A DNA stretch of 64,000 nucleotides from NCBI GenBank assembly GCA_950097015.1, contig CATNEN010000038.1, positions 16,616,001 to 16,680,000 on the forward strand, in the 5' to 3' direction. The notes under the pieces are model-generated. The model did not search any database. It saw only the letters and a program-made list of their open reading frames with translations, and had not been told where the DNA came from. A program made the translations under genes and the position numbers. Positions 149 through 35,832 of the stretch are shown here, in pieces. The stretch comes from Macrostomum hystrix (Eukaryota; Animalia; Platyhelminthes). Within the stretch, counting starts at the first letter, position 1. Every line of letters begins with the position of its first letter.

Positions 149-3100
149 CTAGGATCCAAAATAGTACTATTAAAGTACAACCAACCAGTCGCCACATCAA
201 CAGACAAGAGATCGGATTGCACCTGCCAATTGCCAAATGTTATTTGTCTCCTATGGGATTTGGCTTGCGAATCGCCGGGCAGCCAGGAGCAGGTCACGTG
301 ATACAGGTGTCGAAAGCCGCTCTCCTCGCTGGCCCAGATTAGGCTGGCTGTTCTGTCCGCAGTAGATACAGACAATGGCCGGAGCAGGTCGTGCACCTCG
401 ATCCAACGATTCGGCGGCGCGGTCTCTTCTAGCAGGCTCACTGACGGCTGCTGATTGGCGCCTTCAACTGGCAGGTAAGCTAGCAATCTAAGCGAATCCT
501 GACTGCGGCTCATAGCCTGAACTAGGAGAGCCTCGCCGCCTGTAGTCCATTCAACTCGGACCAGGTATTCGCCTAAATCAAGGCCGCTGACTGGCTCAGA
601 TGAGCAGGATAAATTATTGTCGGCGTCGCTAATGACGCGAACGCGGGTAAGGCGCGACACAGCATTTGGGGTGCCGGCTCGGGGATAAGAGAATTTGTCT
701 GTCTCCAGGCCGCCCTTTAACGGGTCGACAATGTTGATCGACTGCACCTGGGATTCGTCAACAATTTCTACAATCAGATCAAAGCTGGCCGAATCTGTTG
801 AACAATTGGAAGCCGGACGCCACCAGAAGCCGTGGAAACGATCAAATTCTTCTTGAACGGCGAAGGGCGGAAGTCCCGCCGAAATGCTCTTGGAGCTGTT
901 GGACAGGTCGCAGGCCTGCGAAACAGACCGCCTTGCGAGATTAGCGAGCTTTAGTATAATGTTCTTACATTCTTTTGCTACACGTTATCCTATTAATCAG
1001 CTACCTGTCAATTAATCAGCTACCTGTCAATCAATCAGCTACCTGTCACTCTATCATTTAGCTACCTGTCAATCTATCATTTAGCTACCTGTCACTCATC
1101 ATTTAGCTACCTGTCACTCATCATTTAGTTATCAATCACTCTTTTATTAAGCTACCTGTCACTCTATCATTCAGCTACCTGTCACTCTTGCAATCAGCTA
1201 ATTGTCACTCCATCCCTCAGCTAGCCGTCACTCCATCCCTCAGCTAGCCGTCACTCCATCCCTCAGCTAGCCGTCACTCCATCCCTCAGCTAGCCGTCAC
1301 TCCATCCCTCAGCTAGCCGTCACTCCATCCCTCAGCTAGCCGTCACTCCATCCCTCAGCTAGCCGTCACTCCATCCCTCAGCTAGCCGTCACTCCATCCC
1401 TCAGCTAGCCGTCACTCCATCCCTCAGCTAGCCGTCACTCCATCCCTCTGCTAGCCGTCACTCCATCCCTCAGCTAGCCGTCACTCCATCCCTCAGCTAG
1501 CCGTCACTCACCGCAACAATCTGGCCGCTATCCAGACTGATGCAATAAACGTTTCGATCAGCAGCGTAGGCGGCTATCCTAGTGTTTTGAGGGCACAAAG
1601 CTAAATTCAGTGGCGAATGCGGCACTTCAATGCCGATAGGATTTAATTCTTCGTCCTGATTGGCGGATAAATTATCGATTAAATGGAATACAAAGTTCTG
1701 ACAGGCGAACACAATAGTACCGCTGGACGCGTCGAGATCGTAATCAACAATGCCAGTCGAGAATGATCTCTTGCGCTCCTGCAGTAGTTCCTCTTCGCGG
1801 GACAGCCCTCGACTCCCGCCAGATACAATCTGACTATTGATGCTTGCCAGGTTCAATAATCTTTTTGAGACATTGTTGGTAGGAAGCGCCGATGATGTCA
1901 CATCATCCGGATTCTGCTCAGATGCCGCCGACAAATTTGCTGGGTCTACATCGACGCACCAGAGAGTCTGGCCGAGAAAATCGTTAGCAACTAGATAGTA
2001 GACTCGAACTCGCGACCGACCAGTCGACTTATCTACGTAAGCGCGAGCTCGAGGTTTAGCCACGCTGCGCCAAGCGTATTGGCTGAGCTTGGTGCGCAGA
2101 GTGCTGAGTAGGCGAGCAACCTGAGTATGAGAGCGATTGAGAATTATGAAACATGGGATCTGGAAATGAGACTAGCTGTACCTAGGGATCTGGGAATGAG
2201 GCTAGCTGTACTTAGGGATCTGGAAATGAGGCTAGCTGTACTTAGGGATCTGGGAATGAGGCTAGCTGTACTTAGGGATCTGGGAATGAGGCTAGCTGTA
2301 CTTAGGGATCTGGGAATGAGGCTAGCTGTACTTAGGGATCTGGGAATGAGGCTAGCTGTACTTAGGGATCTGGAAATGAGGCTAGTTGTACTTAGGGATC
2401 TGGGAATGAGGCTAGCTGTACTTAGGGATCTGGGAATGAGGCTAGCTGTACTTAGGGATCTGGGAATGAGGCTAGCTGTACTTAGGGATCTGGGAATGAG
2501 GCTAGCTGTACTTAGGGATCTGGGAATGAGGCTAGCTGTACTTAGGGATCTGGGAATGAGGCTAGCTGTACTTATGGATCTGGGAATGAGGATAGCTGTA
2601 CTTAGGGATCTGGGAATGAGGCTAGCTGTACTTAGGGATCTGGAAATGAGGCTAGTTGTACTTATGGATCTGGGAATGAGGATAGCTGTACTTAGGGATC
2701 TGGGAATGAGGCTAGCTGTACTTATGGATCTGGGAATGAGGATAGCTGTACTTAGGGATCTGGGAATGAGGCTAGCTGTACTTAGGGATCTGGGAATGAG
2801 GCTAGTTGTACTTAGGGATCTGGAAATGAGGCTAGCTATACTTAGGGATCTGGGAATGAGGCTAGCTGTACCTAGGGATCTGGAAATGAGTCTAGCTGTA
2901 CCTAGGGATCTGGAAATGAGGCTAGCTGTACCTAGGGATCTGGGGCTGATGCTAATTTTACCTGCGGGTCTAGGAATGTTGCTATATTTTCCTGAGGATC
3001 TGGGAACTGCGATTATTCTAATAATATTTTAATCAATACGAGTATAGCACCTGTTCAAAGCTGAATCGACCATTGGTTTGCAGTTCTTCTTCAATCTGGA

Positions 3101-3206
3101 TTTGGCTAGTCCATTGTTTAGCCCAGTCCTGAGAGGCCGCTGAGCCACTGTCAGAAGCAGTCGCTGCAGTTGCACTACTACTAACAACAGTAGTAGAATC
3201 GCTCAT
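149..3206 (-). CDS. DPP9: Dipeptidyl peptidase 8/9 (S9B family), 5' part; exons 3051-3206, 1512-2120, 149-915; continues beyond the left edge
   Basis: Spliced translation contains LSREEELLQERKR...GIVDYD, SAGLPPFAVQEEFDRFHGFWW (Glu-Glu motif), YPRAGTPNA, LIWASEESGFRHLY and QITFGNWQV, all DPP8/9 propeller motifs. GT-AG junctions are phase-consistent. The catalytic domain is outside the window, and DPP8 vs DPP9 is not resolvable. Confidence 0.9.
995..1510. repeat. 23-bp minisatellite (CAGCTAGCCGTCACTCCATCCCT)n grading into AGCTACCTGTCACTCTATCATTT, DPP9 intron 2
   Basis: Direct tandem units; homogeneous on the right, degenerate on the left. Confidence 0.95.
2155..3008. repeat. 30-bp minisatellite (CTTAGGGATCTGGGAATGAGGCTAGCTGTA)n, DPP9 intron 1
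   Basis: About 27 near-identical units. Confidence 0.97.
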
Positions 3207-3825
3207 GCCGTTTTATCGAATCAAATAAGAACTCGATTTTTGTCTATTTTGTCAATTATTTTGAGGCAAAGTTTCCTGGAAATATTATTATTTACTAGTT
3301 ATAACGAAACATAAACTAATTTTTCTGTGTATAAGGCTAGACAATACTATTCTTAATACGAAATAATAAGAATGAATGTGAAGAGAGAAGTTATGTTAAC
3401 ACGAAAAAACCTATATTTCTTGAATTTTTTGTTGAGCAGTTGTTAAGTTAAATTCATGTTCAAACCTTAGTTAACAGTCACAACAAAACCAAATCAACGA
3501 AATTTGTTAAAATGATAACGAACAACAAAAACTATATCACAATTTTAACACAACACAAAGAGTCTAGACAAAAAAAACAAAGAAACAACGAGACTCTAAT
3601 GGATAATGTGCGATCTGTAAGAATAAAGCGATCAGATCTAGAGACATTGTGACAATAAAAACAGACAGATAAAAAGTTCTTGTGTACATGGCAATACATG
3701 AGAAACAATAAAAATTCGCTGATATGCTTTAACTGTAAGTAATAAATCGAATTCAATTCGGTTGTAAAGCTAAAACTATTGATAAAAATAACGGATTTTT
3801 TCAGGAAATTCCATTGTAATTCCAT

Positions 3826-3960
3826 TGCAGCTTAGTGATGTAGAGCTTCAGATTCAATACCGAGAGGTTCGGAGTTCGAATCCCAGCCAAAGAGAGAAAA
3901 ACTGTATCATTTAGCAAGACACTTTATTCCCTCGTGCTTCAATTTGCCCACGTGTCATGG
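3826..3960 (+). mobile_element. SINE-A, old degenerate copy
   Basis: GCAGCTTAGTG..GTTCGAATCCC..TTTAGCAAGACACTTT. Confidence 0.6.
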
Positions 3961-4472
3961 ACAAAACAGCTATTCTATCGATTCTATTTATAAGATTCTG
4001 TTTTAGTGCCCAAGAGAATATTAAATAAAATAATAACAAAGAAGCAATATAGCATTAACAATGATCAAGAATGATATATCTTCGTTGATTGCAAATCAAG
4101 AATCAAAATAATGTTATTATCGTTAAACAAATTTTGTCCAAGACTAGTCTAAACTGTTTATAAATTTAGAACTGATATAAAAGATACAAAACTAATCATA
4201 AAAATGATAAAGAATGATCATTAAAAGATTGGCTGTTAATGTCAGAAAGTAGTGCAAAAAAACATCAAATAAAAAATTGTAAATAAAAAATCTGAATATG
4301 CTTACCGAATAACAGCAATCAAGCGGGTAAAACAAGACACAAAGCAACTGAAAGTGCCTGCACCGAAACACAATCTCATTGGAATAGATAAGGAAATTTC
4401 TTACGCCTGAATGAATTACTGACATTGAATTTATAATGCGGGCTTTGTAACAAATTATTTGATTGAGATTTC

Positions 4473-5953
4473 TTAGCAGTGGAAAGACCTTGGGGTATTT
4501 AAAATACTAACTTTTTCATTTTTTGTATCTCCTAAAGCAGGGGTCGGCAAACTCCGGCCCGCGGGCCAGATCCGGCCCTCGAAGCTCCCAAATCCGGTCC
4601 GTTGCCCCTTCCAACACATACAGTATCCTGTTTAATCTCTCTCTGATCTGGAGATGGAGAGTCTCATACACTCCTCGGTCTCTTCTGTAATGTGTCTTAT
4701 CTCTCCTCTGTCTCATGTCTCCCTGGCTCACTCTTCTCTGTCCCATCTCTTCTTTGTCTCATCTCTCCCCTGTCTCGTCTATCCCGTGTCTCATCTATCG
4801 TGTACCTCATCTCTTCTCTGTCTCATCTCTTCTCTGTCTTATCTCTTCCCTGTCTTATCTCTTCCCTGTCTCATCTCTTCCCTGTCTTATCTCTTCCCTG
4901 TCTCATCTCTTCCCTGTCTCATCTCTTCCCTGTCTCATCTCTTCCCTGTCTCATCTCTTCCCTGTCTCATCTCTTCCCTGTCTCATCTCTTCCCTGTCTC
5001 ATCTCTTCCCTGTCTCATCTCTTCCCTGTCTCATCTCTTCTCTGTCTTATCTCTTCCCTGTCTCATCTCTTCCCTGTCTGATCTCTTCCCTGTCTCATCT
5101 CTTCCCTGTCTCATCTCTTCTGTCTCATCTCTCCTTGCCTCATCTCTTCCCTGTCTCATCTCTTCTCTGTCTTATCTCTTCCCTGCCTCATCTCTTCCCT
5201 GCCTCATATCTTCCCTGTCTCATCTCTTCCCTGTCTCATCTCTTCTGTCTCATCTCTCCTGTGCCTCATCTCTTCCCTGTCTCATCTCTTCCCTGTCTTA
5301 TCTCTTCCCTGCCTCATCTCTTCTCTGTCTTATCTCTTCCCTGCCTCATCTCTTCACTGTCTCATCTCTCCTGTGCCTCATCTCTTCCCTGCCTCATCTC
5401 TTCTCTGTCTCATCTCTTCCCTGTCTCATATCTTCTCTGACTTATCTCTTCCCTGTCTCATCTATCTCGATCCCGTTTCTCATATTCGAACAGTTAATGC
5501 GGCCCGCTGTCGTCTTTTAGGTTCTCTCTGTGGCCTGCACGCTAATAAGTTTGCCGACCCCTGTCCTAAAGCATTCAACCAACCGCCATGAAAATCCAGA
5601 ACATGTGCTAAAAGTTTACGCTCTATTCGATGAAACAACTTACAGAATCGCAAAGCATCGGCATCGTCGAGATATTCAACGATTGCCGTCGGGGTGCCTG
5701 TTTTGCTCCGATTGCACCGATACTGGCATGCGTTTCTGCTCACAAAATGTCATCATGTAACCTTGTCGGACAAGAAACTTTGACAAGAATCGCTGAATAT
5801 CTCGACGATGCTGACGCCGGACGGCTTTGAAAGTCTGTTTATCGCAAAGGGCGGAAAATTTTGTTTCAGATGTTGGGATTTCACGAAAATCTGTCATTCG
5901 GGAGCTATCGTGAAGTAGGAAATGCTTATTTTAAATACCACAGTAGTCCTTCC
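4473..5953 (+). mobile_element. Fold-back non-autonomous TIR element (family C, possibly piggyBac-like), interrupted by the hAT MITE
   Basis: Ends GGAAAGACCTTGGGGTATTTAAAATA (4481) and TATTTTAAATACCACAGTAGTCCTTCC (5952) are inverted. Internal IR GCATCGTCGAGATATTCAACGATT / AATCGCTGAATATCTCGACGATGC. The related copy at 34938 lacks the MITE. Confidence 0.72.
4538..5563. mobile_element. Non-autonomous hAT (Charlie/Buster-type) MITE carrying an internal 16-bp minisatellite
   Basis: TIRs CAGGGGTCGGCAAACT...AGTTTGCCGACCCCTG; 8-bp TSD TCCTAAAG on both sides; subterminal GGCCCGCGGGCC; internal (TGTCTCATCTCTTCCC)n. Confidence 0.93.
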
Positions 5954-6832
5954 TCGCGGGGAAATTGTGTTGTCTTTCTACTGTTAAATAATTACTTCAT
6001 TTAAGTTTTTCTCGACTTTTGGCAACTAATGAAAACTAATTAACAATAGAGACTGCCAAAATTCGTATCTGAAGTTTGAATTGTGATGAAAGGAAAGGCT
6101 AGTTGTCATTATGCGTTACAAAGTATGAAAAACCTTGTTTTAAAATAGTTTCAATGACTAAAAAATTAGCATACAGTGACGTTTTCTAAAAAAGTAAATA
6201 CTCACCATGTTGTATTCAAATTTTATTTTACAAATCAGAATGACTGTGCTTCTTCAATCGCAATGTCTATTGGTCATGGTATTGACGAACAAAAAATAAT
6301 ACATTTAATATCAACATAGCTTTGTAAGAAACAATAACTTGAGGGAATATTCTTTCAGTTCCACAGCCGAGAGGCATCTGCAGTAAGACTAAGTTACATA
6401 TGTTATTTAGATAATGAAACTTCTATTTTGTTAAACTTATCTCAAACCTATTTTATTTTGCTATCCGGTTTTCTTATACTAGCATAATATAAATAAACTT
6501 AAGGGGGTAACTTTGCTAGTCCTTTATACTAAATCTAGTATTATATGGAGATTGTACAGATTTAACAAATCAGAGACTACCTGTTTATTTATTATTTGGC
6601 AAGTAATTAGTACGATTGGGTAGCCATCGAATAACTAACTAGTGCCGCATAGTTATGTGGTGTTTTTAACGAAGCTAGTTCTGATCTAAAGGGGTTACAA
6701 TGGCTAGTCCTTCATACTAAACGGCACAAAGCATGATCAACACATTAAATATGTGTAGTCCCCATAAAATGTTTTCGTATTGTTTTTCTTCCATTTGCTT
6801 CCATAAGCTTGATTAAAAACAAAAAAGAGCAA

Positions 6833-8951
6833 TCAAGCCGTAGGCAGCTTTGTTCTACTAATGCCACCATCACCGCTGCCACCGCTAAAACTGACGCATT
6901 CGGCTAGCGACACCCAACGTCTGAGCTGGCTAGAGCAGCGAATAGCGGTCAGGGTCTGCTGCACCTGAGCCCAGTAGCTACCAGCCGGATAGTCTATGGA
7001 CTCGTGCATAGCAACAGAGTCTATTAATCCGGCGGCGCATTTTACTAAAGCCGGCGATGCCAATTGCTTCATAGGCATGCCAGCCGACTCGGTGATTGAT
7101 TTTAGAGTCCGCTGCTCGGCCTCCGTAATCGGATCGCTGTGCAAAATTTGAACAGATTCAGCATCGTCCGAATGGGCTGCATGAGTCAGTACAAAATCTG
7201 CCAGTGTTAGACGGCCCAGTTCGCCAATTAGCTCGATGGTGTGCGAGTGTCTGCAACACAGTGATTGTGTAATCTTTTTACAACTTGGTGCGAAGTCACA
7301 GAAATACAAAATATTTTACGCATATATTAAGCACCCGTTATATAGCGAGTCCAACCAGACGTGAACCCAACAGTCGCCAGTCAGCTGCAGATCAAAGCTT
7401 GCCACCTGATCAACGCAGATGCGTCTTATACCTTCAATCTGATCACTGTAAGGCTGGCAGGTCAATAGGTGACCAGAAGCGCGTATTATGCCACAGCCGC
7501 TGTTAGAGCCAATTGCACTACTGCCTTTTTTAGCTAGATCTGCTGAAGCATTGGTGGCAGCTGCCGGTAGGAGATAATGCACGAGATCGATGGCCAGAGC
7601 GCCATTGTAAGCTAGGACTCCACCGCCCATGTCTGGGTCGCAAGTCCAGTCGTAACTGCGGCAGGAACAATTAATTCAGAAAAAGATTGAAATTTCGCTA
7701 ACACATTTTAGGATAGAGGCGTTAAAATACTGTCAGGGGGTCAGTAGCAGAGCGGTTAACGCGTTTGCCTCACGCACCAAGGTCCCTGAGCTTGATTCCG
7801 TGGCGAGGCCACATTGAAATGGGGGCCAACCTTCAAGGCACAGTGAAAGTGTACACTGCATGACAATGAGAAAGTCAGAGCATATGTGTACACACCTGTG
7901 AGCGCGTGCCTGCGTACGGTATCTGTGTGCGTGTTTCTAAACATACAAATACTTTTTTAATTAGTTGGGAATGGGAAGGGAAGCGTTAGTGTTAACAATT
8001 GAGGGTCATTGAGGTACATGTACGAGTGTGTATAAGTCTTTATTAATTGGGGATGGTTGCGTACATTGATGGTCAGTTGGAAAAGGACGGGAGCGTAAAC
8101 TGAGTGTCAGTGTGGGATGAGTGCGTACATCAAGTAGGTAGTAAGAAACATTACTTACCGAGACCCAACTAGCCGAGGACAACGCAGAGTAATATTAACA
8201 ACCTGCAGCCGGCCAATCAGACCGCCTGCGAGGCGAGAGCGCATGCACTGTACAGAGGCTAGGTAACGATAAGAGCAACCGACCGCTACAGTTTCGGGCA
8301 CCCGGTGAGGCGGCGGCGGAGGCGGGGAGAGACGAATTGCCAAAATACCTGAAAATTCCGTTTGAAAAAAGGCATGAAAGAAAGGGAGAAAACATATCTC
8401 TAAGCAAGAGGGCGCTCACCTGTCTCATTAGCCAGCTTAGCTAGGCCAGTTTGTACTCGCTGGCATCGGCAGCACAGCAGCAGCAGAGCCACATCGTCAC
8501 GGCCAGCCAGCACCGCTGGATCTCCGCCAACAAGCACAGCGAAATCTTCCCCTACAGCCTCAATATCGGCATCTTTGGCGATGCCTTCGGCGTCTTGCTT
8601 TAAGAAGGCTTCAAAAGCGGCTCGCTCCGATTCGTCGGCTGTCCAGCAACCAATCAGACGCAGACTGCGCTTCCTAGGCTTATTATTATTATTATATACA
8701 TTAGTATTATTTCTACTGGTTGGGCTCGCAATATTATCAATCTGGCTAGCTAATCTGGAGCTAAAAATTATGTGACGCAAAGCGCATGCAGCGAATGGCG
8801 AGAAACCGAAAACGGCTACCCCTATCTGCTGCGTAGACGTTGACAATCTAGCTTCTTCTTCCTCGCCAAATAGATCTTCGCCTATGTCTGAGCCTGATTC
8901 GGGCGAAGCAGCCTCAACATTATCAATAGTGGTGGCGGAAGACTCTGCCAT
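6833..8951 (-). CDS. GFOD1: Glucose-fructose oxidoreductase domain protein (Gfo/Idh/MocA; GFOD1/2-like); exons 8420-8951, 8159-8348, 7335-7655, 6833-7250
   Basis: Four ORF fragments join with consistent phases (1,2,2). YDWTCDPDMGGGVLAYNGALAIDLVHYL, DQIEGIRRICVDQVASFDLQL, IELIGELGRL and AIRCSSQLRRW match my recollection of GFOD1/2 (YNWSCDDLMGGGGL..IIDLL; DHIKGIRQITSDDFCTF; IKRSSQTGEW). Confidence 0.82.
7736..7935 (+). mobile_element. SINE-B, internally deleted/truncated, in a GFOD intron
   Basis: GCAGAGCGGTTAACGCGTTTGCCTC..GATTCCGTGGCGAGGCCACATT..GTACACACCTGTG. Confidence 0.82.
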
Positions 8952-10459
8952 GCGAAACTGCTGAAATCTTGATGCCTCCTCCTAACCGCATGAGGGATTA
9001 GAATGAAAGGATCGAACGATTGCCACCTGAAAAATAGAATTCCATTTTATAGATTCGTTGAATAGATAAGGTAAAACACAGATTGTGATGCTTAGTGCAT
9101 TTGCATTTATTTAGATCAAGAAAAAAGAAAAAATGAGGGCCAAGTCTTTTTGTTTAAAATCTCTTAATTGATTTAATTTGAAGCAATTATATTTTCAAAC
9201 ATCGAAAACAATAGTCTTTTAAGTTCGCGTAGCAATTAAATAGGTTACTATATAACCAGCTTTTTCTGATATTTTCTGATCTTCTGATTGATAAAGGTTA
9301 CCAGCAATGTGTTGAAGCATTTTATTATCATATTTTTTTAATCCCACTAGTGTTAGCCTTTTCAATGGTCTAATTTCCCAATATAATTGTCTACTGATCG
9401 AGAGTGCAATGTCGACCATACTATTAGTAGTACAACTTACTGTGCAATCAAATATAGAGAAAAATATATCTAGACAAGATAAAACAAAAAAGTAACACGA
9501 TCAAACTTATTTTGAAGTAGAAAAGCACTTAGAAAAATATCCATTTTATCTTTTGTGTGATTTGATAGGTTGTGCTAAAATAAATCAACACAAATGATTT
9601 TAAGTAGGCTTTTCAAACCGATCAAACAGCCTTTAGGAAAAATTAATTGGCAATTTCAGAAGCAATCCATATTTAATAACTTCTTTAAGAAGCAAAAATA
9701 TTATCGTCTACTAGAAGCACTGGTTATCTGTTACGCAAACATTTGGATTGATTTATCCCAGATGGTCATTATTTGAATTTAAGAAGTAGGAAATGATCGA
9801 AAATGGCAGAGTCCGAATGTATATAATTTTTAGATGTAAAAAATTTGACAACACTTGCACAAACACTCTGGATTAATATTGAAAAAATTCTGAACCAAAT
9901 AAAACAAACAAAGCAAGATGTTTACTAGTTTCATCTTAATTTTTTTCATAGTAGATGCGGATATTTAGTATAACAAAAAAGTAGATAAGCAATGTGCTTT
10001 CTATTCTACTTTGTTCTGAGTAGTATATTGAGATAAAAGTGAATGGCCAAACAATCTCTATGTTAACTCTATGTTAAAGGGTCTAAAAATAGATTTCGAT
10101 TAGGAACAAGCAACGTTGTTCTGTTTTGAAGCCACGGGAGATACCACCACATTGGATTCTCGACAGAAAAAAATTCAATACCAGGCTAAATATGCTCGTT
10201 ACTAAACTCTCCTAGTAAAATTTATTTTTATATAATTTAGACACATTCGTTTTAAGCTAGTAATTATAATACAAATAAGCTTTTAAAAGCAACCTGCGTT
10301 TACAGGGGAGACAGAAAATCAGAGCTTTGAAGTACTTAAAATATCGGTCTGAATTTCGAATCCTACCCTAGGGAATTAAACCATGATAGTACCCAGATTG
10401 ATTAAAATGCGTATTTCCCATTTAAGAAATGACGCATTTAGAATCCAAATTTAGACTGT

Positions 10460-10657
10460 AGCACAGCGCGACGCATCTGGAAAGGCTGTGTACACGTGTT
10501 CAGTCCATGGACTGGGGAGACCGAAACAGAAGGGTGAACTGAATAAATTCTGAGTAAAGCGTCTTGCTAGACGACACAAATTGTTCCAATAAAGTCGAGA
10601 ACCGAACCCCATACCTTCAAGTCGTTAGTCAACGCTCTAAACACTAGATTACTACCC
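10460..10657 (-). mobile_element. SINE-A, degenerate copy
   Basis: GTTCAGTCCATGGACTGGGGAGAC..GGTGAACTGAA..GTCTTGCTA..ACCTTCAAGTCGT shared with full-length copies. Confidence 0.75.
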
Positions 10658-10812
10658 CTGAGTATTGAAAATTAAGTTCTTCTGAAATTCCTTCTAGTTT
10701 TAGTTTATAAGCAAAAAAGTCGAGAGTGGCTTGAATATAAATAAACAAGCACTATAGCTAAAGCACCCCAACAGAAAAGTTGGAAAGTTGTATCGAAATT
10801 TTTTCCGTGTCA

Positions 10813-16357: not shown

Positions 16358-16379
16358 AATGACAGTAGAAGTAGAATAG

Positions 16380-19617: not shown

Positions 19618-19709
19618 CTGTAATGAATTATTAGTGACTCTCACTACATACAAGAAGACAATATGAACACATATAGGAGATAGATTTGAAAAATATAGTG
19701 CTTGCTGCT

Positions 19710-20646: not shown

Positions 20647-21447
20647 GCTGCTGCTACAAGTCTGGCCCTATTCATATCAAATTAATTTTTGTCGAGGCCT
20701 AAAAATTAAATTCTTAAATTGGGAATTTTTAAGAAAACAGCACTATATCAAAATATAATATCAAAATACACAGAACAGAAGCCAAAGAAGTAAAACAAAT
20801 GACACACAACAAAAAGCAGCTCAAAATGAATATTAACTGCAACAAAAAACATTATTTATATAAAAATCCACATATTATCTAGCATACAACCAGTACATAG
20901 AAGTCCTATGAAAGGAAATATACAATAAAACAGAACAGTAAGCTACTCGTACTTTACATATAACGAAGCATGGGTTACTTTAATTAATATGACTACTTGT
21001 TGCAACCAAAAAATACAGAAAAATCAACAAGACAACGTATTTATTTTTTATCAATCTGCGGCAGTAATTCGTTACATACTTGCTGAAATGGTTTGTTTAT
21101 TTCGTTAAATCGTTTTATGATTTTTATATCTATGGTTAAAATACCATGCAATGACGATAATCAGAGGTCAGAGGTCACAGGGCCTGACAAAGAATGATTA
21201 ATGCGAGCGCATTGTCTTTTAACCATAGAATTAAATTAACCCACTTAATCTAGGCAGAGCGGTGCTGTATGTGTATTGGAGAAGTATGTGTATTGCGTGG
21301 GTGTGCCCATCCTTTTAATCTCTATAACTATTGGCTTTTTAATGCATGCCATGCATAAGAACCATACAGTACATGTTATATTAGCCATCACCAATTGATT
21401 GATTTAGCAAGTCAAATATAAACAATCTAAACACTTAAACGCTAGTC

Positions 21448-22263: not shown

Positions 22264-22589
22264 TGAACTCTTGGGACTTCAACTAAAAAAACTGTTTGCG
22301 ATGCCACTCTGGGCTTTCACTTTCACTCGTTATAATTTTTTTAAAATCTATCTTGACAGGTCGTCGTGTCGAGATCGGCACATAGGCTGCAATGAGACAA
22401 TTTTAAACAGGTGATTAAGCATTGATTTGACGGATTTATGATTGAGACGATTGTCTCGAACTCGCACAAAATAATAGGAAGATGCGTTTTAATTAAAAAG
22501 GGATTAGAGCTTCGGACTTCTGACCGACAGGGAAAGGGTTCGAATCTTGGCTCTATGAAAGCTATTTGTGTCCTTGAGTGAGACTCATT

Positions 22590-22950
22590 ATAATAATGAC
22601 AATGATTGCAGGAGTGCTGCGCGCAATGGCACATCATTTGAAACACTCGACCTACAGCCTGCGAGAAGGCCATTCTGCTTATTTCACTGGTTCCTGAGCA
22701 CACACACACATGCCCTACGCAGGTACACTCCCACAGGTGTGCACATCTGCACTGACTTTCACATCGTCAGGCAGTATAAACTCTCATTGTGCCTTGGAGG
22801 TTGGCCCTCAAGGGCGTAAATTGCACGACAAGCCCCCAAGCCTTCTCTCCGCGGCTGCGCCTCAAAATTAATGTGGACTCGCCGGGGAATCGAGCTCAGG
22901 GACCTTGGTGCGAAAGGCAAACGCGTTGACCGTTCTGTCACCGACCCCCT
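22590..22950 (-). mobile_element. SINE-B full length, abutting a SINE-A head fragment (~22500-22585)
   Basis: Reverse complement of the 47960-48320 copy. Confidence 0.85.
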
Positions 22951-23267
22951 GAGCGAGACTTATAATCTAGTACACCCAAGTGTAAAATTGGTACAATTTT
23001 TTAAAATACCTTTCTATGTTTAATTTTTCCCTATTTTTGAGGCGAATCTGAAAAACAGCGTTAGTCTATCATTTGCGATAAAATCAAAGCAAATAACAAC
23101 TCGGATTTTTCAAAAATATTTATTTAAAAATTAGGACAAATTTGTTGACCATGAAAAATTGAGAATAAAAAACAACGCATAATTATTTTCAATAAATAAA
23201 TTAACAAGAAGTTCTCTCTTGATATTAAAGTTTAGATAATAACAACTGAGACTTTAATTCACATCAA

Positions 23268-24092
23268 TCACAGCTTAGCAGTTGGACGCCGGTTTGCTGC
23301 GACAAAATTTTCCAACGCTTTAGCATACTCCACTGGGTGCTGATAGTAGTGCGCAGCGTGTATGGATTTGGGCCAGCTGAGAGTGGTCACGTGATGACCC
23401 CGCCTACGCATAGCTGGCAACAATGCCTGCGCTAGTTGTTGCGTATCGCACAGCGAGTCATTCTCGCCGTAGATAAACAATAGCGGCGTTGGAGCCAGAC
23501 TAGTCTGATAAAATTCCACACTGCGCTGATAAAACTGCAGCGTAGAAGAATGAAAAGCTTTGAAATACGCTCCGATTAGGGACTCGGATGCCTGTCGGAG
23601 CAGTCTAGGCCGTACAGCATTGTCAACTAGGCCAGTGATCATGCGATCCACTCCGCCAAATACAATGCTATCCATTATCTGACCACGCAAACAGCCATTC
23701 AATAAAGAATCTAGTTGATTGGCCTGATTCTGTTCAGCCAATCGCATCTGGAACAGGGTCAACAAGTACGCGCCTACCGATGTGCCATGAAAGAATAGAT
23801 CTCTACCATCTAGCCAATCCTGTTCACTGAGGCACTGATGCAGCTCGGAAACGAATCCTAAGCCAGATTGCGGAGCTAGGAAATGCTTAGCCTGACCCTG
23901 AGCAACAATCACATCTAGGCCAATGCGGTGATAGAGTTCGATATATTTTCTAACTGGCGCATCTTTGGCTAGCAACCAGGGAAAGAATATTACTAAAGGG
24001 CGTTGAGCACTTGAAGAAATTTTGGCCGTGTAGAGTCTGATATTGCGCGATAGGACTACACTGCCGGTTTTAGCTGCTGCTGCTGCTGCCAT
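23268..24092 (-). CDS. TMEM53/DUF829-family alpha/beta-hydrolase-fold protein; likely start MAAAAAAK at 24092
   Basis: PLVIFFPWLLAKDAPVRKYIELY, FHGTSVGAY, GQIMDS, LFIYGENDSLC, WPKSIHAAHYYQHPVEY fit the DUF829 motif order. An acceptor TATTTTCAG lies 24 nt upstream of the ATG. Confidence 0.75.
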   Translation of the reverse strand: MAAAAAAKTGSVVLSRNIRLYTAKISSSAQRPLVIFFPWLLAKDAPVRKYIELYHRIGLDVIVAQGQAKHFLAPQSGLGFVSELHQCLSEQDWLDGRDLFFHGTSVGAYLLTLFQMRLAEQNQANQLDSLLNGCLRGQIMDSIVFGGVDRMITGLVDNAVRPRLLRQASESLIGAYFKAFHSSTLQFYQRSVEFYQTSLAPTPLLFIYGENDSLCDTQQLAQALLPAMRRRGHHVTTLSWPKSIHAAHYYQHPVEYAKALENFVAANRRPTAKL

Positions 24093-24724
24093 GCTGACGA
24101 GTTGAAAGAAATCAGCTGAAAATATAGTTAAGCAATAGCTAGTTAATATAAAGGAAAACATGAAACAGTAGGTAACAAAATACCTGTCCTATTTAACCAC
24201 TGACTAAGCCTAAATCTATAAGGTTAGGACATAGACAAAGAAACTGAGTGAAAAAAATACAGTAACGAGGGCTTAGACGAGTCGTTTTAATTACAAGAAC
24301 TCAATTGACAGTTTATTTATTAAAAAATACTTACAGAATGCAATGTGTGTGAGTGCATTGCGAAACATTCCACAATAGCTTAATTTATTTACAACAAGCT
24401 TTCCTAAAATACAAAAAATTACTTTACGATTTTTAAGAGCATCAAAAATATTGGAACATAAAACAAGACACCATTCATAAAACTAGTACCGACAAATGAC
24501 ATGAATAACCTACATTTTATTTATTAACAATTAAGGTAAAGGAAAAACAGCGTTCTTTTTAAACCTAAAGCAGAAAAATGTTTAAATATCACCAAAAACC
24601 GATTTATCAGTGATCACAAGCAATACAAAAGTTTAAGAATTTTCAATGATTTCCGATAAAGAATTTTGTGCCAAAGCATTGACATGTTTAATTGTCAATA
24701 TTGAATGGTACTCGAGATATCCAC

Positions 24725-25242: not shown

Positions 25243-25584
25243 TCAATTTGCTCTACGAAATAGCGAAAATCCAACATAGTAGACTAGAATAAAGCAAAAT
25301 ACGGCGCCGCCAACAATATAGCACATTAGCCTGCGATCGCTTCCAGCCTTATTAGCGAAACCTTTCACTCTGCCCAGCGTGTTCTCCAACAGGCCCTGAG
25401 CTGAGCCGAAGTCCGTGCCCATACCGTCTAGCACAGTGTTGGATCGCTTTACTTCAGCGTCGATATCTTTAGCGTGGCCGCGAAGGGCCGACAATTTAGC
25501 CGCTAGAGCTTCAGCTCGTTGGTCATTCTCGTCCAGAAGAGTCTGCTCATCGTGCCAGTCGTGCCTCGGCTTACCGTTGGGCAT
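25243..25584 (-). CDS. BET1L: BET1-like Golgi Qc-SNARE (GS15/BET1 family), intronless
   Basis: 113 aa: LLDENDQRAEALAAKLSALR..AKDIDAEV..SNTVLDGMGTDF....GLL..TLGRV SNARE helix plus a C-terminal transmembrane segment. Confidence 0.85.
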   Translation of the reverse strand: MPNGKPRHDWHDEQTLLDENDQRAEALAAKLSALRGHAKDIDAEVKRSNTVLDGMGTDFGSAQGLLENTLGRVKGFANKAGSDRRLMCYIVGGAVFCFILVYYVGFSLFRRAN

Positions 25585-25709
25585 TGCAAACTATCCGGTT
25601 TTAGTATAGTAACAAATACGCACTGAAACAAATTATTACTAATAGCGTTTTAGTTATCTTACACTTTATTGATTATACAATTTCGACTTCCCTATATAAT
25701 CTGTGCAAT

Positions 25710-26300
25710 TCTCATCTCTCCCGTGTCTAATCTCTCCCGAGTCTCCCGTGTCTCATCTCTCCCGTGTCTTATCAATCCCGTGCCTTATCTCTCCCGTGCC
25801 TAACCTCTCCAGTGTCTCATCTCTCCTGTGTCTCATCTCTCCTGTGTCTCATCTCTCCTGTGTCTCATCTCTCCCGTGTCTTATCAATCCCGTGTCTTAT
25901 CAATCCCGTGCCTTATCTCTCCCGTGCCTTACCTCTCCAGTGTCTCATCTCTCCTGTGTCTCATCTCTCCTGTGTCTCATCTCTCCTGTGTCTCATCTCT
26001 CCTGTGTCTCATCTCTCCCGTGTCTTATCAATCCCGTGCCTTATCTCTCCCGTGCCTTACCTCTCCAGTGTCTCATCTCTCCTGTGTCTCTTCCCTCCCG
26101 TGTCTCATGTCTTCCGTGTCTTATCTCGCCCGTGTCTTATCTCTCCTGTGTCTCATCTCTCCCGTGTCTCTTCCCTCCCCTGTCTTATCTATCCCGTGTG
26201 TCATATATCCTGTGTCTCATCTCTCCCGTGTCTTTTCTTCCCCGCGTCTTATCTCTACCGCGTTTCATGTCTACCATGTCTTATCTATACCGTGTCTCAT
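25710..26300. repeat. 16-bp minisatellite of the hAT-MITE type, no TIRs seen
   Basis: (TGTCTCATCTCTCC(C/T)G)n with a longer-period variant pattern. Confidence 0.92.
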
Positions 26301-26876
26301 TCTATGGAAGCAGCTTTCGGATTTTAAATAGCGTCTGTTATGCCACTGCTTGTTCTAACATCTGGCCCCACTGAATATTCATAAAAAATGGTTAAAAAAA
26401 GTTGGCTAAGTTTACCAATAGTTACATGAATATATTTACTAGATCTGTTAAGAGCATTTTTTCGCTTCGCAAAAAATGAGAAATTTTCTTAACTAAAAAA
26501 ACTGACATTGGGACACAGGACCCAACAGGTATACGCTAAAATAGCAGCTGAAACAAGATAGCAAGCAAACGCAGGTGAGGCTAGAGCTATTCGTAACAAC
26601 TGAAATGGAAAAATGTATTGGTTTTATTCTAAACTTCAAGAGCAAAACTACAGCTTTGGAAACGATAATACAAAAAGACAAAAGCTAAATTGTGTGCAAT
26701 TCTTTTCACTCACTAATACTGTATCAATCTAGACATTTCAGTTTCGCAGATTAATTAATAAAATTACGAAAATAACTAAAATATCAGCTGGCAACTCGAC
26801 TTTAAATTTCTGATTAATAGTACACAGTCAAAAACATTGTTTCGTTTCTTGGCAATATATGCTGAAACTTTATGTC

Positions 26877-27486
26877 AGGGGTCGGCAAACTCCGGCCCGC
26901 GGGCCAGATGCGGCCCTCGAAGCTCCCAAATCCGGCCAGTTGCCCCTTCCAACACCTATAGTATCCTGTCTCATCTCTCCCGTGTCTCATCTCTCCCGTG
27001 TCTCATCTCTCTCGTGTCTCATCTCTCTCGTGTCTCATCTCTCCCGTTTCTCATCTCTCCCGTGTCTCATCTCTCCCGTGTCTCATCTCTCCCGTGTCTC
27101 ATCTCTCTCGTGTCTCATCTCTCCCGTTTCTCATCTCTCCCGTGTCTCATCTCTCTCGTGTCTCATCTCTCTCGTGTCTCATCTCTCCCGTGTCTCATCT
27201 CTCCCGTGTCTCATCTCTCCCGTGTCTCATCTCTCCCGTGTCTCATCTCTCTCGTGTCTCATCTCTCCCGTTTCTCATCTCTCCCGTGTCTCATCTCTCC
27301 CGTGTCTCATCTCTCCCGTGTCTCATCTCTCCTGTGTCTCATCTCTCCCGTGTCTCATCTCTCCCGTGTCTCATCTCTCCTGTGTCTAATCTCGCCCTTA
27401 TATCATATTTCTATAATCAAAGCGGCCCGCTGTCGTCTTTTAGATTCTCTCTTTGGCCCGCCAGCTAATAAGTTTGCCGACCCCTG
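26877..27486. mobile_element. Second copy of the same hAT MITE
   Basis: Same TIRs and subterminal sequence; 8-bp TSD CTTTATGT; internal (TGTCTCATCTCTCCCG)n. Confidence 0.93.
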
Positions 27487-27699
27487 CTTTATGTAGTCCT
27501 AAAAAGGGCCGTTTCTAAAACTGCTTTTCAATTGTTTTTTTCCTGCTTCATATTTCATGCGTGCTACTATCAGTAGAGTTTTAAGTATTTTGTGAGGTAA
27601 GCTAATGCCTTAGCAGATCGATCGCTATGTTACAACTGATGGATAGATTCTGTTATATAAAATCCTCGCAAACGATAATAAAGCTTCATATATAGACGT

Positions 27700-30080
27700 T
27701 CAGTGCCCACGGACCTGCACCAGATACTGTACCACAGCGTCAACAACATCCTTGGTAGTGGCGCTGCCGCCCAGATCAGGCGTCCGAATGCCGGAGCGGA
27801 GTACGGACAGTACAGCGTTGCGAAGCTTTGTTGCATCGGCCGAATCGCCAAGATATTCCAGCATATCAGCCGTGGTTAGCAACAGCGCGGAAGGATTGGC
27901 AATATTCTTACCGCGAATGGATCGGCCAGAGTTTCGTGTGCCAGCCTCAAAGACGGCGTACTTGTTGCCAATGTTCATGCCGGCCGCGATGCCGGGACCG
28001 CCGACTAGGCCGGCGGCGATGTTGCCGATGATGTTGCCATAGAGATTGGGTAGCACCATCACGTCAAACTGTTGCGGCCTCGATACCAGCTGCATACAGC
28101 AATTGTCAACAATGACATCGCGAAATTCAATGCTGGGATAGTCGCGAGAAACATCCCGGCAGACGTCTAAAAACAGACCGTCGGATAGCTTCATAATGTT
28201 GGCCTTGTGCACGGCGGTGACCCGCTTGCGTCTAGTCTTGATTGCCGTGTCGAATGCAAATTTAGCGATCTGGCGGCTCTTCTTCTCCGTGATGATTTTG
28301 AAGCTCTCAACGACGCCGGGCACATTGAAGTGCTCCAATTGGCTATATTCGCCTTCGGTATTTTCGCGAATCACCAGGATGTCAATCTTGTCATAGCGGG
28401 AGGGCACACCTTCGATAGTTTTGCAGCGTTGCACATAGGCGAATAGATCTAGCTTGGTGCGTAGCAATACATTCTTGGATGTCATGCCTGGAAGATGCAA
28501 ATTTGAAAGACATCGGCTGTTAAAGCTTGAAATCCACAGTCCGTGGACTGAACAGCCGTACACTTATTACACTTAGTACATTATTATAAACAAATTAACA
28601 GCAGAACTAACAAGAGGAATTCTCCCCCCCTGATAATTTTTGTGCTACACCTGAACGGAGCAGAGCAAGCACACGAAAAGCTTGTCCTTCAGACCGTCGA
28701 GATATTCAATGATTCTGGCCGAAGGTCGGATTTTTCCAATAAGCGCTAGTGTATTTGATACACAAATTAGCACTGCGCCTCAGTGAGGCCTTGCCAGGCC
28801 TTCAATTATTTATCAGCATGTCACCCGAATGTGCCTGCATCATCTCCGTCTTCGGTGGTCACCTAACTTTAACTAGACGGACTGCTGGGCCTTCAATGGC
28901 CTCAACAGGTGGAACTAGGCCACTATGTACACCCTGACACGAGTTTCTCTAATTTCGCTGATCAAGCCTAAATATTAGGCGCAGCTCAACCACAGGACAC
29001 CATCGCCTAGTCTGTCAACCAATCATTCACACCCAATGCTGCTAGCATTCAGGCGCTCACAAAAATATATCAGGGATTCCCCCTTGGTATAAAAACGGGC
29101 GGCAAAATTGTTAAGTAGTTCTATTGTTAAATAGTAAAAAACAATCCGAAAAATCAATGAGTCAGCACGACAACGATGGGATGGTTCAGTTTACTTACCA
29201 CCCATGCCAGTGAAGTCCGTATTAGCTGAATGAAAAGAAAATTTATGGGATGAAAATGTGGTTAGATACTAATTACTACAGGATGGCATAACAAATTAAA
29301 GCAACTAATCACAAGTTGGTTGTGTTATTAAATTTAGAAGCCAACGGTTATACTAAAAGCTTGTAAAAATCACACGGTTATAATTCATTAAAGGTAATTA
29401 ATGCGCTTGAATTAATAGGACTTATTGATTTACTTGTCTTCACCACCAAAGCAGTGGTCGGCAGCCTTTACCCAATCACATCTCTTTATTTTCTTATCTC
29501 GCAACTTCACTATCTCTTTACAATCAATGCGGTCGTCACTTGTATAATCTTTTTAACTTGCGAAACATATTAAATTGTCGACCCCAGTTTTCAAGCTAAT
29601 TAGAAAAAACAAAGCAACTACCCTACTACTCTACTTACAGTAGAAACACTAGAAAATATGTAACTAACCTTCAAACGTTTCCAGATTGCCTTTCAAACCC
29701 ACGCCGTTGCGTTTCACTGACAGAATCGCCCGGCGCATGTCTTCATCGGAGCCACGCTCGGCTGACAACGAAATCTCTTCGAAGTCTATGGGCGAACCGG
29801 CGACATTGACGACTCGCTTCACGGAATCCATCAGCTCCGGCCCGATGCCGTCGCCGGGAATTAGCGACACGTGATGCCGGCCGCCGTATTTCGCCGCAGT
29901 CAGAATTCCGCCAGCTTCGAGGCCTTGATCGGCGTGCTGCAGAGAGGCTTCATGACTAGCAGATGGAGGAGTACCATCAGCGGCTGACGAGCTCAAATGT
30001 CGACTAAAGATAATGCGGCTGCCCTTGTTAGCCGCAGAACGAACAGCGCCTAGGCTGGCGCAGAGCAAACGCAGGGAGGC
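27700..30080 (-). CDS. IDH3G: NAD-dependent isocitrate dehydrogenase subunit gamma, mitochondrial; exons 29669-30080 and 27700-28487; initiator ATG lies elsewhere (see findings)
   Basis: AKYGGRHHVSLIPGDGIGPELM, IRENTEGEYS, VTAVHKANIMKLSDGLF, QFDVMVLPNLYGNI, NIANPSA, RTPDLGG. Arg/Ser/Ala-rich transit peptide ASLRLLCASLGAVRS. Phase-1 intron 28488-29668. Confidence 0.92.
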
Positions 30081-30339: not shown

Positions 30340-30610
30340 GTCACAAACTGGTTTAATGCATTTGCATCTTGCACCAAGGTCCCTGAGCTCGATTCTGCAG
30401 AGATGCTACAGTATTTAATGGTAGAACCTACCTGCTAGGCAAAGTCAGTATACACTGCCAGTGCACAACCCAATTCTGTGTGCCTATGTATGATCTTTGT
30501 CTGAGTGTGTGTGCTCGGGAGTCAGTGTAATGGGCATAAATACCTCCTGTCTGGCTGCAGCCAACTATTTATATATGATGTATGCCAGTGCACGATAGCC
30601 TTCCTACAAA
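30340..30610 (+). mobile_element. SINE-B, CpG-decayed copy
   Basis: GCACCAAGGTCCCTGAGCTCGATTC..GTGTGTGCTCGGGAGTCAG..CTGGCTGC; most family CpGs replaced by TG/CA. Confidence 0.72.
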
Positions 30611-32919
30611 AAAATACAACTTATTTCGATGGAAATTACACTTAGATCTTCATACCAGTGTTAAAAAAACAATGCTGGTTTATTTACTTACTTAGATATT
30701 TTTTAAATAGTGATTTGTTGGAACATTTTTACCAAATTGTATACTATATACAACATACAGTACTGTAGTTTCTCTAACGTATTTTTAGCTTAAAAAATAC
30801 TAATTCTTTCTTACTTATTAGTGAATAAACAGTCAAATCATGTTTATATCAGTTCAAATACAGTATAGATGTAAGTATATGCTCAATTAGCTAGTTGGCA
30901 TAATACTTATACATACTTAGCAATTGATTTTGGCAACTAACAACAGACAATACTGCAATGGACAATACTACAATAACTTCCTGCAATGGATTATTTTATC
31001 AAAAACTAAAAAACCTCCCAACCTGCTTTACTGGCTAATTAGACATTAAATAAATTAAACTAATTAACAAATCATAGAACTCATAACTATTTTAAGGAGT
31101 TGTAGTTTGAAACTATTATTACTCAAATTTTATCAATAAAACTTAAATTATTTGGTAATTCCAAGACATTTAAACCATCAGGTGAACTGGAAAAATTCAA
31201 TTTAAGAACAGCAATAGCCCCCATTCCAATCATAGATCTAAACAAATTTTAATAAAAATATTTTGGCACGCACCTTTTCTTTATACAGGGGGAAAACTGT
31301 CAGTTATTAAATAAAGCAGACACTTTTTAGTAGAAGACACTTCTGACCTTGCATTTAATGCATGCCAGTAAAGATGCATGAAAGATGAATTGGCAGCCCT
31401 CTCAGACTATTGCATTGTTATGAGACACTGTGACTGAAAAGTCTCTATATAGATTCTAATAATTTTGGAAACAAACATTTTTAATCAGGGAAATTGGGGC
31501 TCTTATTAATTTTATATAAATTTATTGGGACTTTTAGCTGTTACAGAAGGACTTAGCAACATTTTTTCATGAAATTTAGAACCAAAAGCTCACAATTGAA
31601 ATTTCTGCTTTCTTTGTCTAAAAGTAAGCCAATTCAGTTAATACTTTTTTCTAGATCTACATTAAATGGTTCACTTATTTCAATAAATAAACAGTTCAAT
31701 CTTAGCCTTCTATATAATTTCAAAATCCAAAAAATAATTTTGGTAAATTTATTTGATTAGCAAATGACTTAGGTTCTGGAACACTGAGTCACTTAGTCAT
31801 ATACTAGTGATTATTATTTTGTAAATACAAAATGTGATAATATTGCTTGCTTGTTTGTTTGCCATTGACTAACATCCAAGTACTCAACGATTTTGTGCAA
31901 TTCCTTCACCAAAGGATGCCATATGGGTCAAAAATGGTACAAATATAGTTATTAAGTTTTATTTTTTTAAAAGTTTTTTTACATAATTGACATTTGTCAA
32001 TTTGATATAGCTATATAGAAACATGCTACATAGTATTTTTCTTATACACTTGAGCTCACTTGCTTTTTGCTAAAAATTAGCTGGATTAACAATAGGCCTA
32101 AATAGCTAAGCTATGCAACTGTGTAATTACATTATGATAATTGGTACCTAGACAAATTGTCCTCTATTTATATTATAGTCTATATACATGACTAAGTGCC
32201 CAAGAGACAGTGTGTGAAAGATTGTAATAATATATATGATAGGGAAGAGGCCTAGGAATCCACTATATGCCTATAGTCATATACACTATACTAATTTAAA
32301 GTGAATAGTTGAATTTTGAGCTTTTTACGAGCTATACATTTACAAAACCAAAATCTTTTATTGCATTTTTAATTGTTTTATTTTTTCTTTGTGATACAGC
32401 TTTGTGCTTCTGATTTTTAGGTAATCAATTTATCAAGAGGAGTGGAAACTGACACTGTTTATAATTTTGCAGTTAGATGCCATTATCAAGACAATACCAA
32501 TAGGCCTAAGGTAAGGTAAGGAGGGTAGATAATGAGTGTTTAAAGAGTGGATAATAAAGTCTTTCACATTTACAATATGACAAATTTTAAGATGAAAAAG
32601 GGCAAGATGACAGTGTCTAGGAACCTGACAATCAAACTGCAAGGACTTTGCCATATGCTACAAGACTTATTTTAGCCTACATTTCATTCAAGGCTACAGT
32701 AAGCCTAGCAGTGTGAATAAAAAGCTAGGCCTAAATATATAATTTGCTAGCTTTATCTGATTATCTTTATTAACACCAACATTTTAGTAGTTCAATTATA
32801 CAAAAATAATATAAGCTAAATACTGCAAAACATAGCATAGGCTGCATAGATAGCCATATATAGTCAACATAACATAAGATAATCTTAAAGGCCAAGGCAT
32901 AAAAAATTAAGTGTCCAGT

Positions 32920-33700
32920 GTCGTGTTTCTACTTTATTTTAATTAGCTACTTAATATAAAAAATTAAACGCTTTCCCTCACACGCTTGATCACAGTATTA
33001 TACGCTTGATTCTAGATTTGATTCCGTGTACGTGTATATTTCTTGGTAAGTTCTGTCCCCATTCGAAAATTTTGTCGAATAAAGTCGATTTCAAATTCGT
33101 GCATAAAGTATAACAAGTAAGTGCCTTATCGCCAGCTGTCCTATCGTACTAATCATATAAAGAATAGGTTAAACGATACAAAGATGTTGCCTGGCAAAGT
33201 GCAACAGTCTTCTTTGTAGTGGCTGCATATAAGACAATTCTCAATGCAACGCCAATCACCTGGGCGCCTTCTTTAAGACGACAGCAAGGACTTCGAATGA
33301 GTTAGTTCGATAGGCCATCTGTTGAAATCACCGTTGACACCATCCTGGGAGGGACGTTGGCCCTAAATCTCATGTCTGTGCCCGCTGTGGGTCAGAAATA
33401 CGAGCTACGTTTACTTTGGGCGCCATAGTAACGGAAACAGCAACGGATTACTTAAAAGTATAGAAATGGCAATATATAATAAACGAAATTATGCTTCTCG
33501 GAGCTTCTCGACCGACAACCCGTATGCTGTCCGCTGCTTCTTATTAAACGAATGTCGATCGATGATGCACGCCTGGCCATGATGCGATCGTTTTTTTGTA
33601 GGCAGTAGTCTTACTGTAGGCAGAATTTGAATGTTCAAACAATATGTTACCTTACCAATACGAAGCACTTCCTTTATACATGCATATATACATAACACAA
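32920..33700 (-). promoter_or_regulatory. CpG-rich promoter-like patch, candidate promoter for IDH3G and the downstream cluster
   Basis: Abrupt return of CpG dinucleotides after a CpG-poor tract. The minus strand carries GTTACTATGGCGCC (RFX half-site/YY1-like ATGGCG) at ~33419-33432 and a TATATA at ~33475. Function is inferred only. Confidence 0.4.

Positions 33701-35780: not shown

Positions 35781-35832
<52 letters not shown>

Follow-up and report, generated by a model that had tools for sequence, protein, structure and literature searches.

A co-oriented cluster of spliced-leader trans-spliced housekeeping genes in Macrostomum hystrix that probably includes at least one operon of about four genes

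In the flatworm Macrostomum lignano a spliced leader (SL) of 35 nt, which ends in AUG, is added to the mRNAs of 30% of genes, and 15% of genes have been assigned to operons by the rule that SL genes on the same strand are separated by a repeat-adjusted gap of <1 kb (Ustyantsev & Berezikov, 2021; PMC8629364). Of these operons 75% have two genes and 18% have three, and the maximum of nine is found in two operons (PMC8629364). Precursors with several trans-splice sites make up 6.9% of assembled transcripts in the same species (Wudarski et al., 2017; PMC5730564). Here we describe a run of ten genes, from IDH3G to DPP9, at positions 149-33700 of a stretch of 64,000 nucleotides from M. hystrix (contig C38, 16,616,001-16,680,000; referred to as the window). 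A preliminary description, made from the sequence, had proposed that all ten form a single operon. The operon idea itself is already published for M. lignano, with up to nine genes (PMC8629364). The locus is an SL trans-spliced, co-oriented housekeeping cluster of a kind that is ordinary for Macrostomum, and is a new example of a published phenomenon. The cluster probably includes at least one operon of about four genes, or perhaps of eight.

The resemblance to M. lignano lies in an identical 35-nt leader ending in AUG, acceptors of the form [CT]TNCAG, the housekeeping nature of the genes, and spacers swollen by satellites and short interspersed nuclear elements (SINEs). The locus differs in that its inner spacers are about 290-390 nt after adjustment for repeats, against a mode of about 100 nt in M. 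lignano, and in that a ten-gene operon would surpass the nine-gene maximum, although two or three of the junctions fail the distance criterion. The M. hystrix genome also has a second family of SL RNA genes, while a single SL has been reported from M. lignano.

The SL2-type operons of Caenorhabditis elegans (2-8 genes) share with this locus the co-orientation of the genes, a spacer running from poly(A) site to acceptor, and resolution by SL, but there the downstream genes are marked with a dedicated SL2 and the spacers are about 100 nt. Leader specialization of this kind is not known in flatworms, and leader type can therefore not be used to diagnose operon membership. The trypanosomatid units are also long same-strand runs of unrelated genes, with SL trans-splicing coupled to polyadenylation; they are non-animal, contain tens to hundreds of genes, all of them trans-spliced, and have no gene-specific promoters for RNA polymerase II, a regime to which nothing at the present locus points. 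The parasitic flatworms Schistosoma, Echinococcus and Hymenolepis belong to the same phylum as Macrostomum and resemble it in that only part of the genes are trans-spliced, that there are several SL RNA variants without target specialization, and that the leader AUG can initiate translation (PMC12582326). The operon thresholds applied to them are 200-1000 bp, and their chimeric precursors can span several kb; unlike here, their candidate operons are usually pairs, at a cut-off of 300 bp (PMC12582326).

RNA evidence in the COMMD10-USP15 block

The evidence comes mainly from four neighbouring genes in the middle of the cluster. Spliced genes (IDH3G, COMMD10, GFOD-like and USP15) were searched exon by exon.

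18071-19617, minus strand: COMMD10, three exons (19617-19421, 18930-18585, 18229-18071), from Pfam COMM (18492-18932) and spliced contigs; acceptor AG 19619-19618, ATG 19605, stop 18190-18188, mRNA 3' end 18071-18076
15736-17527, minus strand: UCHL5, single exon, from Pfam Peptidase_C12 (E 7e-61) and UCH_C (16380-17435); acceptor AG 17529-17528, ATG 17435, stop 16380, mRNA 3' end 15736-15761
14397-15213, minus strand: profilin-like gene, single exon, 162 aa; used acceptor AG 15215-15214, ATG 15141, stop 14653, mRNA 3' end 14397-14450
10676-14109, minus strand: USP15-like gene, from Pfam UCH and DUSP (10813-13983); acceptor AG 14111-14110, ATG 13983, stop 10813

RNA contigs from four runs in two studies (assembled contigs, not raw reads) were placed on positions 13901-19900 only. 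The contigs from runs X5 and X6 are identical to the window and are spliced over both COMMD10 introns (joints 18229/18585 and 18930/19421). They therefore represent RNA of the same species. Nine contigs (from X5, X6 and X3, covering both studies) stop exactly at the G of an AG at one of four positions, and each continues for a further 20-22 letters that have no genomic match there:

19618, COMMD10: spliced contigs, 21 non-genomic letters
17528, UCHL5: contigs of 1790 and 1815 nt, 22 non-genomic letters
15214, profilin-like gene: contigs from X5, X6 and X3 (the last from the second study), 20 non-genomic letters
14110, USP15: contigs of 3337 nt (X5) and 3299 nt (X6), with 22 and 21 non-genomic letters

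All four end points are an AG preceded by a pyrimidine tract. The alignment always includes the G of the AG, which fits a leader ending in G (...GCATG). An extension of constant length, about 21 nt, on four unrelated genes is the pattern that a shared leader would leave in assembled contigs; it would not arise from an adaptor, from a transcription start or from 5' exons private to each gene. The proposal that the genes are trans-spliced is thus supported in all four testable genes, including COMMD10, whose acceptor had been missed in the preliminary description. The eight acceptor strings that it did list are all present where it placed them, and three could be compared with RNA contigs: 17528 and 14110 are exact, while the site proposed at 15207 is replaced by one at 15214, 7 nt upstream. 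By chance, about 26% of 130-nt stretches should contain the motif [CT]TNCAG, so that acceptor motifs alone are weak evidence.

The spacer between UCHL5 and the profilin-like gene is covered in part by a perfect 177-nt contig from X5 (15372-15548), at a depth of 2.5 compared to 54 and 12 in the flanking mRNAs. The contig lies on a satellite whose other copies in the genome are 72-76% identical. Given that the match is perfect here and at most 76% elsewhere, the spacer itself is transcribed at a low level. Transcription therefore reaches back at least 334 nt from the profilin-like acceptor, so that a separate promoter would have to fit within at most about 190 nt downstream of the UCHL5 3' end. 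The high depth at 17529-17900 coincides with a dispersed repeat. A depth of 2-3 in the bins at 14101-14500 was considered as possible spacer RNA and rejected, since the ends of the flanking mRNA contigs explain all of it.

UCHL5 has a long 3' untranslated region (UTR), which ends near an ATTAAA at 15755, and is 89% identical to M. lignano PAA76912.1, which places the window in a Macrostomum species other than M. lignano; the next matches are transcriptome proteins at 83-88%. The assignment of the profilin-like gene comes from a weak Pfam Profilin match (E 0.25) and from Atlas, where the feature score is 0.92 and 29 of 30 matches fall in Profilin clusters; a word-index search found no homologue of this open reading frame (ORF), and a PDB sequence search found nothing. 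In COMMD10 the leader AUG is in frame and open, and would add five residues (M-L-V-N-S). USP15 has a probable 120-nt intron at 11332-11451, based on a donor and phase check. Its contigs appear to stop at 10676-10713, where they meet a SINE, and the true 3' end may be further on. Such tRNA-derived SINEs are found in a COMMD10 intron (19150-19400) and in spacers (10464-10678, 20460-20660, 22520-22960 and 3810-3945). The RNA contigs are very rich in them, with summed depth in the thousands, and they break assemblies, as at the USP15 3' end.

Intergenic distances and the extent of transcription units

The M. lignano rule (PMC8629364) was applied to all nine junctions, as a repeat-adjusted gap of <1 kb between adjacent SL genes on the same strand. 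Repeat content was taken from Tandem Repeats Finder (TRF) and from searches against the M. hystrix assembly itself (220 Mb in 42 contigs). The junctions are listed from the IDH3G side to the DPP9 side. The first number in each line is the distance from stop codon to next acceptor, and these nine distances agree with the range given in the preliminary description. MITE denotes a miniature inverted-repeat transposable element.

IDH3G-BET1L, minus strand: 2077 nt; about 790 nt after subtracting about 1290 nt of satellite/MITE
BET1L-TMEM53, minus strand: 1127 nt; about 720 nt after subtracting 405 nt of satellite
TMEM53-BTB, minus strand: 881 nt; about 430 nt after subtraction of what we read as SINE fragments
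BTB-COMMD10, minus strand: 1830 nt; about 1.0 kb with the presumed 3'UTR also subtracted; borderline
COMMD10-UCHL5, 17529-18070, minus strand: 662 nt; 543 nt from the mRNA 3' end; about 390 nt without repeats (dispersed repeat of about 150 nt at 17644-17797)
UCHL5-profilin-like, 15215-15735, minus strand: 1166 nt; 522-547 nt from the mRNA 3' end; about 320 nt without repeats (satellite of about 224 nt)
Profilin-like-USP15, 14111-14396, minus strand: 543 nt; 287-340 nt from the mRNA 3' end; unique, the own-genome search finding only the spacer itself
USP15-GFOD-like, 9028-10675, minus strand: 1786 nt; about 1650 nt from the inferred 3' end; SINE of about 215 nt (10464-10678); 1.2-1.45 kb unique
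GFOD-like-DPP9, 3277-6590, minus strand: 3557 nt; about 3.3 kb after a predicted poly(A) signal (AATAAA at 6593); about 1.66 kb unique

Six of the nine junctions pass the 1-kb rule (three with measured 3' ends and three calculated from stop codons), one is borderline and two fail. With the 300-nt cut-off of PMC12582326 a single junction passes, namely profilin-like-USP15 at 287 nt. It had been suggested that the larger gaps are filled by repeats. This is true of IDH3G-BET1L (about 62% repeat) but not of USP15-GFOD-like (about 13%), while the GFOD-like-DPP9 spacer is about half repeat (transposable element at 5470-5992, satellite/MITE at about 4560-5470 and SINE at about 3810-3945). The USP15-GFOD-like and GFOD-like-DPP9 spacers are likely to be breaks between transcription units.

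On balance, and with some reserve, we favour the reading in which COMMD10, UCHL5, the profilin-like gene and USP15 form a real operon, while GFOD-like and DPP9 are separate units; polycistronic transcription is here deduced rather than seen. The four genes (about 19618 to 10676, about 9 kb) would most likely be transcribed as one polycistronic precursor, from which 3'-end formation, coupled with SL trans-splicing, would release four mRNAs. Throughout the cluster the leader would be joined to an AG acceptor 12-126 nt upstream of each ATG, and would thereby cap each mRNA. In IDH3G the acceptor would lie at the first codon, and the AUG of the leader itself would be the start codon. IDH3G, BET1L, TMEM53 and BTB may be a second unit, or may be joined to the first to give eight genes. 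GFOD-like and DPP9, each behind 1.2-1.7 kb of unique spacer, would probably have their own promoters and outrons (an outron being the stretch of pre-mRNA upstream of a trans-splice acceptor).

Several observations weigh against a four-gene operon. Spacers of 290-550 nt exceed both the mode of about 100 nt in M. lignano and C. elegans and the 300-nt cut-off used for parasitic flatworms (PMC12582326), and might contain internal promoters. Among the four mRNAs, contig depth varies by as much as five-fold (12 compared to 45-67 in X5). Among the contigs placed on 13901-19900 none bridges two genes, although the runs are small and rare precursors could escape assembly; nor was locus-specific RNA seen over the profilin-like-USP15 and COMMD10-UCHL5 spacers in these small runs. 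Furthermore, we infer that the 20-22 extra letters are the SL from their length and position, and the acceptors of DPP9, GFOD-like, BTB, TMEM53, BET1L and IDH3G are predictions from sequence.

An alternative is that there is no operon at all, each gene having its own promoter, located in the spacer upstream, and a short outron removed by SL trans-splicing; co-orientation would then be either an accident or conserved synteny. All the spacers are at least 287 nt long, which is room for a compact promoter, and both the unequal depths and the lack of bridging contigs are in line with this. By our own estimate a run of ten genes on the same strand should occur a few dozen times among tens of thousands of genes. 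We nevertheless think this explanation less likely, because the three inner spacers are below the published operon threshold, polycistronic precursors are common in M. lignano, and the low-level transcription upstream of the profilin-like acceptor leaves so little of that spacer for a promoter.

That all ten genes (at least 30 kb) are one operon with a single promoter upstream of IDH3G, resolved by SL, is improbable. In its favour, all ten lie on one strand with no plus-strand gene among them, each has a plausible acceptor (the four that were tested all being used), and chimeric gene models of parasitic flatworms have been taken to imply polycistronic precursors whose genes are several kb apart (PMC12582326). 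Against it, the unique spacers at USP15-GFOD-like, GFOD-like-DPP9 and (about 1.0 kb) BTB-COMMD10 are of a size that belongs to the non-operonic mode of distances in M. lignano, no RNA bridging genes was found in 13901-19900, and among the published operons of that species 93% have two or three genes and just two reach nine. The proposal of one promoter and one 33-kb pre-mRNA is therefore not supported as it stands: at two junctions the unique spacer is longer than 1 kb, and another is borderline. It had leaned on a single promoter-like CpG patch at the upstream end, and this argument is void. The CpG observed/expected ratio (o/e) is 0.80 over the whole window, and mostly 0.5-1.3 outside satellites over 1-30000. 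Given that there is no background depletion of CpG, CpG islands cannot mark promoters in the window. IDH3G, the supposed first gene, does not fix a transcription start either, because it is probably trans-spliced itself, at 30081.

Other genes of the cluster and the spliced leader genes

The ORF list and Pfam together give ten recognizable genes in 149-33700, all on the minus strand and head to tail, as had been described. No plus-strand gene was seen between them; the plus-strand ORFs of at least 100 aa are read-through of satellites or of one repeat. Pfam supports the names given to the DPP9-like, USP15-like, UCHL5, COMMD10, BTB, TMEM53 and IDH3G genes. The BET1L and profilin-like names are weaker, the SNARE match of BET1L being below the Pfam cut-off and the profilin-like name coming from weak Pfam plus Atlas, and the GFOD label is unconfirmed. 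The six genes outside the four-gene block are as follows.

149-3275, minus strand: DPP9-like gene, 5' part, running off the window start; Pfam DPPIV_N (145-747), E 3.7e-25; acceptor AG 3277-3276 predicted from motif and ATG (3206)
6833-9026, minus strand: GFOD-like gene (identity unconfirmed), multi-exon, from ORFs; predicted acceptor AG 9028-9027, ATG 8951, stop 6833
21448-22386, minus strand: BTB-domain gene, from Pfam BTB; coding sequence 22263-21448, predicted acceptor AG 22388-22387
23268-24115, minus strand: TMEM53/DUF829 gene, from Pfam DUF829 (23268-24161); predicted acceptor AG 24117-24116, ATG 24092
25243-25622, minus strand: BET1-like SNARE gene, 113 aa; predicted acceptor AG 25624-25623, ATG 25584
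27700-30080, minus strand: IDH3G, from Pfam Iso_dh (27700-28563, 29664-30068); exon 1 30080-29669, intron 29668-28488, exon 2 28487-27700

The SNARE domain of BET1L has an E of 0.0014. TMEM53 has a possible cis donor at 24183, and the introns of the DPP9-like gene contain satellites of 23/46 bp and 30 bp. For the GFOD-like gene no match was found in Pfam, in a PDB sequence search or in the representative library, and a HMMER search with its exon 1 against 1.84 billion representatives found nothing; Atlas gives weak leads to GFO_IDH_MocA (0.79-0.83).

IDH3G is 92% identical to M. lignano IDH3G. Its exon 1 has no ATG and begins at the predicted acceptor AG 30082-30081. The terminal AUG of the leader is in frame with the ORF and would give M-ASLRLLCASLGAVRS... 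(M-ASLRLLCASLG...), which resembles a mitochondrial presequence. In sequence terms IDH3G thus has the marks of a gene whose start codon is supplied by the SL, namely a first exon lacking ATG and a leader AUG in frame, and it is probably trans-spliced at 30081. At the eight genes other than IDH3G and COMMD10, the leader AUG opens upstream ORFs of 7-40 codons; the one in BET1L overlaps the main start in a different frame.

Next to the IDH3G acceptor, on its upstream side, there is a CpG desert (30500-33000; 2.5 kb, o/e 0.18, GC 30%), in which TpG (1.14) and CpA (1.24) are mildly raised and nearly all of the sequence is single-copy. By comparison, o/e is 0.8-0.9 in other AT-rich spacers with the same GC content. 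Between IDH3G and the next gene, a single-exon protocadherin with six cadherin domains (48320-51127, minus strand), lie about 18 kb with no recognizable gene, containing Q-rich or low-complexity ORFs (34287-35404 and 37507-37974) and satellites at 34000-48300. Arrays of a 16-bp satellite (TGTCTCATCTCTCCCG and variants) are found in spacers at 4540-5560, 25700-26380, 26880-27490 and 45250-45650. The array at 26880-27490 is flanked by inverted repeats (...gcaggggtcggcaaac...), which occur on one side at about 4540-4600, as if the satellite had a MITE-like carrier.

Linkage of IDH3G and UCHL5 is kept in M. lignano, where the two are 3-4 protein accessions apart on both of two duplicate scaffolds: IDH3G is PAA76908.1 and UCHL5 PAA76912.1 on a scaffold of 444,234 bp, and PAA82505.1 and PAA82502.1 on one of 426,231 bp. 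Such linkage is to be expected between congeners and is not proof of an operon. Tags of M. lignano genes such as 'Mlig012936g2' were considered as a record of position in a transcriptional unit. They are not, since the prefix denotes a cluster at 95% identity and g1/g2 denote duplicate copies located on two scaffolds; no mention of gene ids of this type was found in the literature.

The 35-nt M. lignano leader is found unchanged at least 23 times in the M. hystrix genome. The exact leader (...GACTCAATTTATTGCATG) occurs in 11.6-kb repeat units beside a U1 small nuclear RNA gene, and some copies continue into GTAAG, an Sm-like AUAUUUUUAG and a 3' hairpin, the hallmarks of a true SL RNA gene. In the second SL RNA family the leader differs by three substitutions (...GACTCTCTTTTTTGCATG); its copies alternate with 5S rRNA genes in a 927-bp tandem array, and they too carry a GTAAG donor together with an Sm-like site and a 3' hairpin.

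C39:12,667,884-12,685,526 and beyond: SL RNA gene loci of the two families (compare C15, C17 and C42)

Other leader copies are dispersed and fused to different sequence with no GT donor (C3:9,792,961, C7:8,561,392, C7:9,274,918, C8:3,485,170 and C1:19,308,502). They look like retrocopies of trans-spliced mRNAs or mobile elements carrying the leader, and one of them is followed by a Tc1/mariner-like transposase ORF. The dispersed copies keep the bases that precede the leader in the SL RNA gene (...ccgtaaaga), which suggests that more than 35 nt of leader may be transcribed.

Significance for Macrostomum

SL operons are one of the few routes by which animals can co-transcribe unrelated genes, and Macrostomum is a transgenic model for regeneration. 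If, against expectation, all ten genes did form one operon, it would be the largest by gene count in flatworms (the published maximum being nine in M. lignano, and eight in C. elegans). It would also be unusually long for an animal, and would imply that kilobase spacers laden with repeats do not stop read-through by RNA polymerase II. As it stands, the locus is a further example and not a new phenomenon. Because four acceptors and mRNA 3' ends have been precisely mapped, its spacers are directly testable. The locus could thus be used to calibrate the maximum length of a flatworm intercistronic spacer, and to test, in the range of 300-1500 nt, the distance rule by which 15% of M. lignano genes are called operonic.

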